From: Octopus sinensis
Lineage: Eukaryota
Length of the DNA: 64,000 bases
Assembly: GCF_006345805.1 (NCBI RefSeq)
Contig: NC_043002.1
Span: 61,690,001 to 61,754,000 of the forward strand
Direction: 5' to 3'
Shown here: positions 34,870 through 39,754 of the stretch, one piece after another
How the letters are laid out: the number at the start of each line of letters is the position of its first letter
Position numbering within the stretch: the stretch's first letter is position 1
Program-made: the position numbers and the translations under genes
Notes under the pieces: generated by a model
Told to the model about the DNA's origin: nothing
The model's input: the letters and a program-made list of their open reading frames with translations, nothing else
Database searches by the model: none

Positions 34870-34898
34870 TTATTTATTCATTTATTTTTGTTTTACAG
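34870..34898 (+). promoter_or_regulatory. Splice acceptor upstream of GPCR-1
   Basis: TTTATTTTTGTTTTACAG ends at 34898, 22 nt before the ATG; conserved in the paralog. Confidence 0.6.
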
Positions 34899-34920
34899 CT
34901 ATCACTTCTTTCTGGAGACA

Positions 34921-35796
34921 ATGGATGTAGACCACGTAATCAAGTCAATAATACTTTCACTCGTCGTAAGCTTCGGTTCCGTGTTTAATATCTACTGCTT
35001 TGTGTCAATTTTGAGAAGCAAAATTAGGCGATCAAAAATATGGCTGTACGTTGTAACTATGAACGTTTCTGACACCATCGCTATGTTCGGTTACGGTATC
35101 ATAATCATATGTCATTTGAATGAGCTCTCTCTACTGAATGATATAAAAACCTTATGTAGATTAGTGTTTCTACTAACGGCATTTTCCGGATTTGTTTCAA
35201 CTTGGGTTTCAGCAACTATCGGTATTGAACGGACATTATGCATTTTCTTTCCCATCATACACCGCGTAAATTGTAGTTCATCTTTCACAATGACTGTGTT
35301 ATTAATCACAATTATTGTATCCCTGCCATACACAGTGGTGGCCACTATTTACATCCGTGCTGATAACGTCTGTTTTTATAAATACAAACATTTGTTCTAT
35401 ATAGATGTTACTCTGCAGGCTATACTACCCTCTGTGATAATGGGCTTTTGTAACATTGCCATTATCTACAAACTTTTTCATCGGCCTACTTCTATAGGAA
35501 CCAATCCGTCATCAAGGCATGCTGTCAAATCGCTTAAGCTCATTTTGGTCAACAATTTCATATTCATTGTTACGAATGTGATGGCGTTACTGTTTTCAAT
35601 TATATCAGATGAATATGACTTGCTTCAATCCGAATACTTTGTATATTACTTACTCGGAACTGTATTAAACCATTTCACTAACGTGTTTTTCTATCACAAC
35701 ATGGCCTTCCAGGTTAGGGCTATGTTTAAATTCGATAAGCGGCTCAAGAATTTATGGACACCCAGTGCCGACGCTCTGGCTCTATCAGCATATTGA
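34921..35796 (+). CDS. Class A-like 7TM GPCR (FMRFamide-receptor-like / molluscan chemosensory-like), 291 aa, intronless CDS
   Basis: Seven hydrophobic segments; TM1 GSVFN, TM2 NVSD, TM3 C..STW..IGIERTLCIFFP, ECL2 Cys, TM5 LP..CN, TM7 NHFTNVFFY; intact frame; AATAAA at 35861. Confidence 0.9.
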   Translation: MDVDHVIKSIILSLVVSFGSVFNIYCFVSILRSKIRRSKIWLYVVTMNVSDTIAMFGYGIIIICHLNELSLLNDIKTLCRLVFLLTAFSGFVSTWVSATIGIERTLCIFFPIIHRVNCSSSFTMTVLLITIIVSLPYTVVATIYIRADNVCFYKYKHLFYIDVTLQAILPSVIMGFCNIAIIYKLFHRPTSIGTNPSSRHAVKSLKLILVNNFIFIVTNVMALLFSIISDEYDLLQSEYFVYYLLGTVLNHFTNVFFYHNMAFQVRAMFKFDKRLKNLWTPSADALALSAY

Positions 35797-37929
35797 ATAT
35801 CTTACTGGAATCACAATGAGTACACATGAGGAAATATACCGTTTTCAGGAATTATAATTGAATAAAAAAATTGTAATTACACAATTACATACTTAAAACT
35901 TCGTTATTTGGTCAGTTATTGTTGATTAATTGGTGTTGCTCTCCATTCTGTAAAGTAATGAGTTGCAAATCTACACACATTGTGGTCTAAGCTTTTTATA
36001 GAATCGGTACCTCTTAACTATTAAATCACATATTTAAGTTAACATCTTCTATTTACATATTAGATACTAAGAGACACAATAAGATGCATATTATCCTGAT
36101 GCAGTGTCATTCTTGCTCGATGGTACGATGCATGGTATATGATAAAATGAAGCTTTTCCAGCCACATAATTCTTTCCAGAAATGTTTTTGAAGAAAGATG
36201 CAACTCCCAAATTATCGGAATAATCTTAATTACATCTATATACCTTAGCGCTACTCATTCTGTGTTAACAAAGAACAAGGTACAATATATATATATATAT
36301 ATATATATATATATATATATATATATATATATATGTATTGGCCTACCCGCTTAACCAACGGGATGGCGTCATTTTATGGCTAAAACAACGCGAAGCGCAT
36401 TGTGACACGTGATGTGTAGCGAAATCTCATAGCCTGGTCGGTCACGGTAATCACGGTGATATATATATATATATATATATATATATATATATGTATTCAT
36501 ACTATTTACTTAATGAATACCAAGACGTACATTGGCCAATATTGCAGTGCGCTGCAGATCCTACGTTGCAGTGATAATCACATATTCATCCATGCTGCTC
36601 TAATGTAATCATTTCTCGTTGAATTGATAAATTGATTGTAGTAAATACTATATTTTAATAATCAAAGTCTTTCATACGTTAAATATGAAGGTTAAAACGT
36701 AAAGAGTTTCAAATTATAGATTACGGTCAAGAATTTATGAAGTTTTACAGTGTAAAATTACTGTATTCGATATGGAAAATACAGAATACCTTTTTAATAG
36801 TAAGAAATCCACACTTATAGGACGCTCCCACTTATGGCAGATGTTGTAAATGATAGCTGGGCATTCTCACAATCAAAATACCAATCCGTTAACGTCGTCT
36901 CTTGATATTCTAGTAAAAGTAACGTAATTTACTTCGCATCACAATCCAATTCTGCATCCATATCCTTGCTTGTAGGTGGCCTGACGTTAAATGGGAACAA
37001 TAACTATGCCGTTCTGTGACGTCGTTCGTATAGAATAATTAAGCATACATAGGGAAACTCTAAGTCCTATATTTCTCTGGGATATGGTGAAACTATAACG
37101 AAGAATTGGTATATATTTTTAGCGAGAAAGCTATTCTTATTTAACAAACTATTTAAAACCCCGTCATAAAAATTGACAAAAGTTTTATGGAAAACAAAAT
37201 ATAAATATCAATTTCTTTACTTTGTAACTATCTCAGACACTTTTAGCAGTTGTACTACATTATCACAGAGGAAGGTATTCAATAAATTCACGGAAAATAA
37301 ATTTGTAAATTCTTTGTCTTTTGACAAGGTAAAAGCCAAATGAGTACTCACTCGCGAGACATTATCCAGCCACAGTATTGCACAGGTATTCTGAATGAAA
37401 AGTAACGGATATTTAAGCAATGTCACCTTAATATTTCTTCTGAGGTCGACTAAATGTTAGAGCTACGGCAAAAGAAAGTGACAAAAGAAATGCCAAACTG
37501 AAGAAAGCAAAACATAATTGGGGTCATCTTGTTAGAGTAAGCCTGCCGCAGTCCCAATGTCCCAATGCGAAGGAGTATTAAATTCGAAGACGCTGTTATA
37601 TGCAGGCAGTGGCTCTCAAGTTTAGTTTCTCAGGCGATCCATGACATAAAAAAATGGCTGTTAAAATGTTTGTCTGCCCGTATTTAGCAATATAAAAAAC
37701 AACGACTATATTGTCATTTGAAAGTTCATTTGAACATTGAATTAATATTCTTCTTTTCTAATGCTGTCCCAGGAGTTGCTATGCGGTAAGAAGCTTGTAT
37801 CCCAACAACATGATTCTGCGTTCAATCCCACTGCGTGGCACGTTGGACAACTGTCCTCTACTATAGGCACGGGCCGACCAAAGGCTTGTGAGGTGATTTC
37901 TTAGACCCAAACTAAAGACGCGCGTCGTA

Positions 37930-38145
37930 TCTATCTATCTATCTATCTATCTATCTATCTATCTATCTATCTATCTATCTATCTCTCTCTCTCTCTCTCT
38001 CTCTCTCTCTCTCTCTCCTCTCTCTCTCTCTCTCTCTCTCTCTCTCTCTCTCTCTCTCCTCTCTCTCTCTATATATAATATATATATATATATATATATA
38101 TATATATATATATATATATATACGTATGTATATATATATATAGGG
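37930..38145. repeat. (TATC)n(TC)n(TA)n microsatellite
   Basis: Direct reading. Confidence 0.95.
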
Positions 38146-38330
38146 AGAGAATTCACAAAAAAAGTCGAAGACAGATGGTGTAAACAACAAATAAATTTAT
38201 TAGTTTAACGCTCAGGAAGTGAAAAAGTCTTTAACGTTTCGAGCCTAAGCTCTTCCACAGAATCGAACACAGAAAGAAACAGGGAGAGAAAATAAAGAAT
38301 GTGTAGTGGCTAATGATCTATATTGGCAAG
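38140..38330 (-). mobile_element. HHR1/pLTR fragment abutting (TA)n
   Basis: - strand CTGTGGA A GAGC TTAG GCTC GAAAC GT T AAAGAC at 38227-38260. Confidence 0.7.
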
Positions 38331-38829
38331 GATATGTATATATATATATATATACATGTATGTATTTATGTATGTATGTATACGTTTGTGTGTCTGTGTT
38401 TGCCCCCCCCCCAACAGTGTTTGACAACAGATGGTGTGTTTACGTCACGGTAACTTACCAGTTCGGCAAAGGAGGCCGATATGATAAGTAGTAGGCTTAC
38501 AAAGTATAAGTCCTGGGGTCGATTTAGTCGAGAAAATGTGGTGCCCCAGCATGGCTGCAGACAAATGACTGAAGCAAAAAAAGAATTAAAGAATATCATA
38601 CACTCAAACACACACAAATATATATATATAATACATATATATAGAAGAATACGTATGTGTGTATATGTGTGCCTGTGTGTGTGCGTGTTTTATACGTTCA
38701 CACGAGTCTTGATGCCTCACTCAATGTTTTTGTATATGTCCAACGGATATATATCCGTGCATACTATTTCCGTATTATGATGAATGTTAAAATTGTGTTG
38801 TATATAAATGCTTTTCAGTTTTACTTATT

Positions 38830-38853
38830 TATTCATTTATTTTTGTTTTACAG
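38830..38853 (+). promoter_or_regulatory. Splice acceptor upstream of GPCR-2
   Basis: Same TTTATTTTTGTTTTACAG, ending 38853, 22 nt before the ATG at 38876. Confidence 0.6.
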
Positions 38854-38875
38854 CAAACACTTCCATCGGGAGACA

Positions 38876-39754
38876 ATGATTTTAGAGCATGTAATCCAGT
38901 CAATAATACATTTATTCTTCATACTCTTCGGTTCCGTGTTTAATATCTACTGCTTTGTGTCAATTCTGAGAAGCAAAGTTAGGCGATCTAAAATATGGCT
39001 GTACGTTATAACTTTGAACGTAACGGACACCATCGCTATGTACGGCTACAGTATCATAATCGTATGCCATTTGCACGTGATCACCATACTGAATGAAATC
39101 AAAGCCTTATGTAGATTAGTGTTTCTACTAACGGCATTTTCCGGATTTGTTTCAACTTGGGTTTCAGCAACTATTGGTATTGAACGGATATTATGCATTT
39201 TCTTTCCCATCATACACCGCGTATATTGCACTTCATATTTCACAATGACTGTTTTATTTATCATAATTATAATATCTCTGCCATACACAGTGGTCGCCAC
39301 TATTTACATCCGTGATGATGATGTGTGCTTTTTTAAATACAAACACATATTCTATATAGATGTTACACTGCAGGCTATACTGCCCGCTGTGATAATGGGC
39401 TTTTGTAACATTGCCATTATCTACAAACTTTTTCATCGGCCTACTTCTATAGGAACCAATCCGTCATCAAGGCATGCTGTCAAATCGCTTAAGCTCATTT
39501 TGGTCAACAATTTCATATTCGTGACATCAAATATAATCGTGTTACTGCTTTCAGTATTATCAGATGATTATGACTTGATTCAGTCCGATCTGTTTTTATA
39601 TTATTTTCTCGGAACCGTATTAAACCATTTCACTAACGTGTTCTTCTATCACAAAATGGCCTTCCAGTTTAGAACCATGTTTAAATTCGATAAGCGGCTT
39701 AAGAAGAATTTACGGATACCCAGTGCCGATGCTGTAGCTCTATCAGCATATTGA
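38876..39754 (+). CDS. Paralogous 7TM GPCR, 292 aa, intronless CDS
   Basis: About 58 aa differences from GPCR-1 by manual alignment; same motifs (NVTD, IERILCIFFP, NHFTNVFFY); AATAAA at 39805. Confidence 0.9.
   Translation: MILEHVIQSIIHLFFILFGSVFNIYCFVSILRSKVRRSKIWLYVITLNVTDTIAMYGYSIIIVCHLHVITILNEIKALCRLVFLLTAFSGFVSTWVSATIGIERILCIFFPIIHRVYCTSYFTMTVLFIIIIISLPYTVVATIYIRDDDVCFFKYKHIFYIDVTLQAILPAVIMGFCNIAIIYKLFHRPTSIGTNPSSRHAVKSLKLILVNNFIFVTSNIIVLLLSVLSDDYDLIQSDLFLYYFLGTVLNHFTNVFFYHKMAFQFRTMFKFDKRLKKNLRIPSADAVALSAY

Follow-up and report, generated by a model that had tools for sequence, protein, structure and literature searches.

Genes for G protein-coupled receptors (GPCRs) and chemoreceptors that have a single coding exon usually carry an intron in the 5' untranslated region (5'-UTR). 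In the clustered protocadherins and in UGT1A, variable first exons with promoters of their own are spliced from their donor sites onto shared constant 3' exons. Class-A GPCRs of octopuses have undergone lineage-specific expansions in tandem clusters (Ritschard et al. 2019, PMC6408891), and lineage-specific expansions are also described for Lophotrochozoa (PMC11886862). In Aplysia, the AcCR candidate chemoreceptors are rhodopsin-like proteins of 319-433 aa whose genes are clustered and have one coding exon each (Cummins et al. 2009, PMC2700072). Among mammalian odorant receptors (ORs) 5'-UTR exons are shared by OR5V1 and OR12D3, and exon 5 of TRIM58 is spliced to either OR2W3 or OR2T8 (PMC3566163; Volz et al. 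2003 as cited there). Here, we analyze a stretch of 64,000 nucleotides from Octopus sinensis (RefSeq assembly GCF_006345805.1, contig NC_043002.1, positions 61,690,001 to 61,754,000, forward strand; the whole stretch is called the window in the following), which contains two neighboring receptor open reading frames (ORFs), A and B, each preceded by the same acceptor-like sequence. The reading that we cautiously prefer is that of separate genes, namely a tandem duplicate pair of an orphan octopod class-A GPCR in which each copy would have inherited a 3' splice site in its 5'-UTR.

The pair resembles the octopus class-A expansions in its octopod origin, its class-A fold, the head-to-tail arrangement of the duplicates and the scarcity or absence of orthologues outside the lineage; it stands apart as a small family of proteins of about 290 aa. 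With the Aplysia AcCRs it has in common that the coding region is intronless, the genes are clustered, the N-terminus is short and E-R-x takes the position of DRY (ERT/ERI in A/B, ERC in AcCR), whereas A and B are shorter with 291-292 aa as compared to 319-433 aa. One coding exon, a putative acceptor some tens of nucleotides before the ATG and organization in tandem clusters are reminiscent of vertebrate OR genes; however, there is no homology beyond the class-A fold, and the shared-exon transcripts of ORs have been proven on the RNA level while A and B are known from genomic sequence. Protocadherin and UGT1A clusters are likewise tandem arrays in which each exon encodes a whole functional module, but in A and B a stop codon and a poly(A) signal close each unit and there is no constant exon to be joined, i.e. 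the topology is reversed.

Both receptor ORFs are intact, lie on the plus strand and are arranged head-to-tail with their starts spaced by 3955 bp (Table 1). They are 80% identical on the amino acid and 88% identical on the DNA level. A tblastn search of the 64 kb did not reveal a third receptor copy. The Pfam model 7tm_1 (PF00001) matches B with 32.6 bits, above the cut-off of 30.5 bits, and A with 28.0 bits, just below it; both matches span positions 2-250 of the 260-position model, and both proteins also match nematode chemoreceptor families weakly. An AlphaFold2 model of A (pLDDT 80, pTM 0.81) consists of seven long helices plus helix 8, and the top 50 matches retrieved with it from the PDB by Foldseek are all class-A receptors (TM-scores 0.60-0.77), the best of them being class-A peptide, opioid and somatostatin receptors (0.7-0.77). 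Arginine 104 (within ERT/ERI at the E/DRY site) as well as C79 and C151, the cysteines of transmembrane helix (TM) 3 and extracellular loop 2, are conserved in family alignments. The NPxxY site in TM7 reads N-V-F-F-Y, such that asparagine and tyrosine are kept and proline is replaced. The N-terminus is short, with TM1 beginning by about residue 3-8.

The closest database protein stems from Octopus bimaculoides (A0A0L8IB86) and is 84% identical to A and 80% identical to B. A third copy of the gene comes from another octopod, where it is carried by a Logan contig of 1.7 kb (L001) that is uninformative on neighboring genes; the protein encoded there (P0002) is 78% identical to both A and B. Only two relatives above 75% identity exist in the databases, and in a profile search of 1.84 billion representatives a single cluster reached E=1e-179, all other matches staying at 1e-19 or weaker, the value of the next-closest relative (locus L004, protein P0003). 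The family is thus a small, isolated and apparently octopod-restricted set of orphan GPCRs. The ratio of non-synonymous to synonymous substitutions (dN/dS) amounts to 0.47 for A versus B, 0.30 for A versus L001 and 0.24 for B versus L001, at dS values of 0.21-0.48, and indicates that both copies are maintained by purifying selection. Exact-protein look-ups of A, B and the O. bimaculoides relative returned no record, and a search with a 130-aa N-terminal alignment for partial products on short RNA contigs yielded no match. L001 and L002, the only contigs with the third copy, show colinearity with the genome up to their terminal microsatellites and therefore probably derive from whole-genome shotgun sequencing; their run accessions turned up in none of the papers searched.

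Table 1. Features of the A/B receptor locus. Positions are counted from the first nucleotide of the window.
Feature	Position	Strand	Description
Unit A distal upstream segment	31543-31678	+	Homologous to 38619-38754 of B; cut off from the remaining unit A by the later insertion
Derived insertion in A	31679-34791	-	3.1 kb, at -107 from the AG; not in B or L001
Unit A polypyrimidine tract and CAG	34852-34898	+	Conserved; putative 3' splice site, with branch point, of an intron in the 5'-UTR; 3' splice site matrix score 9.8
Unit A leader	34899-34920	+	22 nt from AG to ATG; predicted non-coding 5'-UTR; 68-82% identity
Receptor A ORF	34921-35796	+	291 aa, intact, single exon; orphan class-A (rhodopsin-like) GPCR
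Unit A AATAAA	35861-35866	+	64 nt after the stop codon; followed by CA and a GT-rich stretch
Unit A 3'-UTR and downstream flank	35797-37966	+	76-86% identity to 39755-42031 (blastn); repeat families D5-D10, D13, D15
Junction between the units	37770-38643	.	Only dispersed SINE-like repeats and microsatellites; matches at least six other places in the window
Unit B upstream segment	38619-38806	+	From the duplication; all ancestral upstream DNA retained by B, about 235 bp before the AG
Unit B polypyrimidine tract and CAG	38807-38853	+	Conserved; putative 3' splice site
Unit B leader	38854-38875	+	22 nt
Receptor B ORF	38876-39754	+	292 aa, intact, single exon; paralogue of A
Unit B AATAAA	39805-39810	+	50 nt after the stop codon
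Unit B 3'-UTR and downstream flank	39755-42031	+	Homologous to the flank of A; extra internal copy of about 330 nt

The original prediction was based on the observation that an identical acceptor-like sequence precedes both receptors, and proposed that one upstream exon might be spliced to either of them. In fact, the window contains exactly two occurrences of TTTTGTTTTACAG, 34886-34898 and 38841-38853, both on the plus strand, while shuffled sequences let expect 0.01 occurrences. Because both sites copy one ancestral site, this statistic speaks for common descent only. The distance from the AG to the ATG is 22 nt in A as well as in B, just as had been reported. A, B and L001 were also compared over the surrounding DNA. 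In the 47 nt that end with the AG (positions -47 to -1), A and B are identical in 46 positions (98%), and about 45 of the 47 positions agree with L001, which carries an additional 4-nt insertion (82-84% identity with the gap counted). Identities in the comparisons amount to 45-62% for positions -99 to -48, 68-82% for the 22-nt leader, 72-84% for third codon positions and 60-81% for the 3' flank. The 47-nt block is therefore the only non-coding stretch clearly above neutral identity. A binomial estimate with a neutral divergence of 0.25-0.3 per site assigns a probability of about 1e-4 to 1e-5 to two or fewer substitutions in 47 nt.

The changes that did occur within the block consist of two pyrimidine-to-pyrimidine substitutions, the insertion TTTC, which is all pyrimidine, and one adjacent purine-to-purine substitution; the AG is invariant. 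Because the block is conserved above neutral and its changes keep or add pyrimidines, it most likely represents the 3' splice site of a 5'-UTR intron, and we regard the AG as a probable splice acceptor in actual use. A rough textbook matrix gives the site a score of 9.8, which puts it into the best 0.8% of the window's 6674 AG dinucleotides; when both strands are counted (128 kb), only 55 sites do equally well, corresponding to a chance of about 1.3% for one to lie within 10-40 nt of a given ATG. Furthermore, L004 carries an unrelated, equally strong acceptor, TATTTTTTATTTTATTTTAG/G (the slash marks the cut), 28 nt before its ATG. The comparison of this L004 site with its orthologue L012 (about 93% identity) is too close to be informative.

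The ancestral acceptor would accordingly have been handed down to both copies as an element ending 22 nt before the ATG, and each copy, as a terminal coding exon that ends at a poly(A) site of its own, would act as a separate gene. Following the duplication, a transposable element entered the upstream region of A, gene conversion probably took place between the copies, and purifying selection has acted on both. A tolerates a 3.1-kb insertion only 107 nt upstream of the AG, and this suggests an intron rather than a promoter at that place, since an intron would accommodate it more easily.

The extent of the duplication could be delimited by self-comparison. In a blastn search of the window against itself, 34792-37966 matches 38747-42031 with 76-86% identity, such that the homology continues for about 2.2 kb downstream of the stop codons and reaches 37966 and 42031, respectively; in unit A, a dispersed repeat resembling short interspersed nuclear elements (SINEs) at 37770-37966 closes the flank. 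The contiguous match begins 107 nt before the AG, in agreement with the earlier statement that homology starts about 100 bp upstream. This is not the edge of the unit, however: homology resumes further upstream, where 31543-31678 and 38619-38754 are 75% identical over 136-138 nt. The intervening 31679-34791 must be a derived insertion in A because L001 and B run uninterrupted at this place, L001 being colinear with B across the insertion point in a three-way alignment. The insertion has (TA)n at both edges, (TG)n inside and A-rich low-complexity sequence at 32240-32450. On its minus strand lie degraded, frameshifted ORF pieces with reverse-transcriptase-like motifs (about 32781-34602), for which the Pfam match to RVT_1 is weak (E=0.06). 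Its CpG observed/expected ratio is 0.1-0.7 as compared to about 1 in the surrounding locus. Judged from the three-way alignment, the homology edge 107 nt upstream of the AG in A is the edge of a later, retroelement-bearing insertion and not a cassette boundary.

By the same comparisons, the duplicated unit is a whole segment of about 3.3-4 kb that was duplicated in tandem on the DNA level rather than an exon cassette. It comprised about 235 bp of upstream DNA, the single coding exon, the poly(A) region and a downstream flank of about 2 kb. A protein tree of A, B, P0001 and P0002 lacks resolution and therefore does not place the duplication before or after speciation. An origin by unequal crossing-over between SINE copies on either side is not supported, no matching SINE being present upstream of the distal segment of A. 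Immediately downstream of unit B (41993-43430) there is a local tandem duplication with a period of 717 bp and 99% identity that contains a SINE-like element and microsatellites. Two sites at 42384 and 43101 that match the 13-mer with two mismatches, taken as possible remnants of a third and fourth unit, fall within this SINE-containing 717-bp repeat and are devoid of receptor homology.

Each unit ends in TGA followed by its own AATAAA, as had been stated before, at a distance of 64 nt in A and 50 nt in B. Conserved after the stop codons are the region around the hexamer, a CA that follows at about 20 nt and a stretch rich in GT; together they make up a canonical layout, and this block is kept in all three copies. 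No further homologous or coding exon was found downstream of the units in the window. The earlier description of each receptor as one terminal exon behind an acceptor thereby gains indirect backing from the constraint on the 47-nt block, the 3' splice site score, the parallel in L004 and the AATAAA with its GU-rich stretch; the use of the acceptor, on the other hand, is something that we infer. Directly after the AATAAA, a 7-bp AT-rich inverted repeat (TGTAATT ACAC AATTACA) is present at 35872-35889 and 39817-39834, and B and L001 each alter one arm base to a G·U-compatible one. A hairpin of this repeat was dismissed as a functional element, its folding being no better than that of shuffled sequences (z = -0.1 to -1.3). 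The conserved 3' flank of the three copies stops about 480-500 nt after the stop codon, before a microsatellite, at a donor-like G/GTA (36280-36281 in A, 40258-40259 in B, around 1650 in L001). The contexts are AAG/GTACA, CTG/GTAAT and CAG/GTAAC, and four conserved bases carry little weight at near-neutral identity. If this donor were used, the receptor exon would not be terminal.

Several observations weigh against separate genes with a 5'-UTR intron. The ancestral upstream DNA that remains in B amounts to just about 235 bp, beyond which sequence derived from transposable elements follows. An ancestral first exon located further away would not have been copied, and B would then need a promoter within the retained DNA, a new first exon or that of A. 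In four more distant relatives (L003, L005, L006 and L010) no strong acceptor stands close to the ATG. Gene conversion could account for part of the identity that A and B show in the acceptor block, and the hexamer reads AATAAG in L001. Two other readings were considered. According to one, the genes are intronless, the T-rich block is the proximal promoter and/or the 5'-UTR of an unspliced transcript, a compact promoter of each copy lies within the duplicated DNA of about 235 bp and the CAG is not used. That B is under purifying selection with just this much ancestral DNA in front of it is explained most simply if everything needed for expression fits there, and the lack of an acceptor in the four distant relatives points in the same direction, as do a TATA-like TATATAAA/TATATATA and an initiator (Inr)-like TTCAGT at the 5' edge of the block. 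Many molluscan rhodopsin-family GPCR genes are, moreover, reported to be intronless (PMC2700072). The spacing from the TATA-like to the Inr-like motif is however about 14 nt instead of about 30 nt, and L001 has retained neither of the two. Almost every change in the block preserves or adds a pyrimidine, and the AG is invariant, a pattern expected for a 3' splice site and unlike that of transcription-factor sites. Despite the 3.1-kb insertion 107 nt upstream of its AG, A has not evolved faster in its protein (dN of 0.113 for A and 0.112 for B, each against L001), and any longer unspliced leader of A or B would include the ATG at -68 as an upstream ATG. We consider intronless genes a rather doubtful, though sensible, explanation.

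According to the other reading, a promoter and first exon upstream of A serve both receptors, the first exon being spliced either to the exon of A, with the transcript ending at the poly(A) site there, or, with A and its poly(A) site skipped, to that of B. Alternative exons are known to arise when exons are duplicated in tandem. Equivalent acceptors and separate poly(A) signals are present in both units, and the scant upstream DNA of B, together with the gap of transposable elements and microsatellites that separates it from the flank of A, would fit such an arrangement, as the first exon of A would have made B expressible at once. Neighboring mammalian OR genes can indeed share 5'-UTR exons (PMC3566163). 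Several findings argue in the opposite direction. The homology boundary, which had served as an argument for a shared exon, is the edge of the insertion in A and loses its force. No candidate for a common exon was seen in the 34 kb upstream by a search that was based on ORFs and is blind to short non-coding exons. Given identical acceptors and a canonical AATAAA/GU-rich region behind A, nearly all transcripts would be expected to use the proximal exon; the constraint on B, however, is no weaker than that on A. The acceptor-to-ATG layout also occurs in L001 and, independently, in L004, and is hence a property of the gene type and not specific to the A/B pair. The prediction that a common coding N-terminus might be added is contradicted by the leader: although the 22 nt are open in frame, as claimed, and the open frame extends 153 nt upstream in A and 231 nt in B, the leader is without coding constraint (YHFFLET, KHFHRET and NHFFLVI, with non-conservative replacements), and L001, owing to its 4-nt indel, is out of frame upstream of the AG. 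A shared first exon upstream of A is thus distinctly improbable, and we give equally little credence to the pair being a two-way alternative-last-exon switch between whole receptors that was born from duplication of a terminal coding exon. The observation behind the original prediction is correct but was over-interpreted. For separate genes, which we continue to prefer, we infer the independence of the two copies from one common first exon.

A and B are thus an ordinary lineage-specific class-A GPCR duplicate pair with a conserved and probably functional 5'-UTR acceptor, and a shared-exon mechanism is unlikely. The pair adds a well-delimited tandem member to the octopod lineage-specific class-A GPCR repertoire, and the short polypyrimidine-AG element before the ATG stands out as a constrained regulatory feature of A and B. 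Should a shared first exon nevertheless exist, the locus would be a clear-cut invertebrate case in which alternative terminal exons decide between receptors and would illustrate a route by which a promoter-less duplicate survives. It would still be a variant of a known phenomenon, as transcripts with shared 5' exons are known for vertebrate ORs.

A few further features of the locus deserve mention. Within the coding sequences, A and B are identical, synonymous sites included, over a run of 134 nt (35432-35565 and 39387-39520, codons ~171-215), while each of them differs from L001 at about 17% of the positions in the same codons. Further identical runs measure 70 nt and 40 nt. These runs suggest gene conversion between the two paralogues. 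The ATG at -68 from the main ATG (34853-34855 and 38808-38810) is present in A and B and not in L001; it would open an out-of-frame upstream ORF if an unspliced leader started further upstream. A separate first exon within the 235 bp was also considered. The consensus donor CAC/GTGAGT of the distal segment of A reads ACGAGT in B and TTGAGT in L001, and the candidate was rejected, as was a 10-nt GAGTCTTGAT block, whose conservation is not significant at these divergences. A CpG island indicative of a promoter was sought, and the CpG observed/expected ratio of about 1 across the locus proved uninformative.

The DNA of the window has an A+T content of about 65%, and dispersed repeats as well as (TA)n microsatellites abound in it. 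Apart from the two receptors, no host coding ORF of at least 75 aa is apparent in the 64 kb; the 111 other ORFs of this size gave only transposon domains in Pfam (RVT_1 twice and a Mos1-type helix-turn-helix once), and a scan of the window against Rfam returned no match. Transposon remnants elsewhere in the window lie at 16392-16739 (minus strand), 19740-20318 (plus strand) and 47106-51790 (plus strand). By eye, the first of them resembles a mariner-like N-terminus and the second the reverse transcriptase tail of a long interspersed nuclear element, the Pfam domains not being assigned to particular ORFs. Positions 23374-23473 consist of 100 N and represent an assembly gap.

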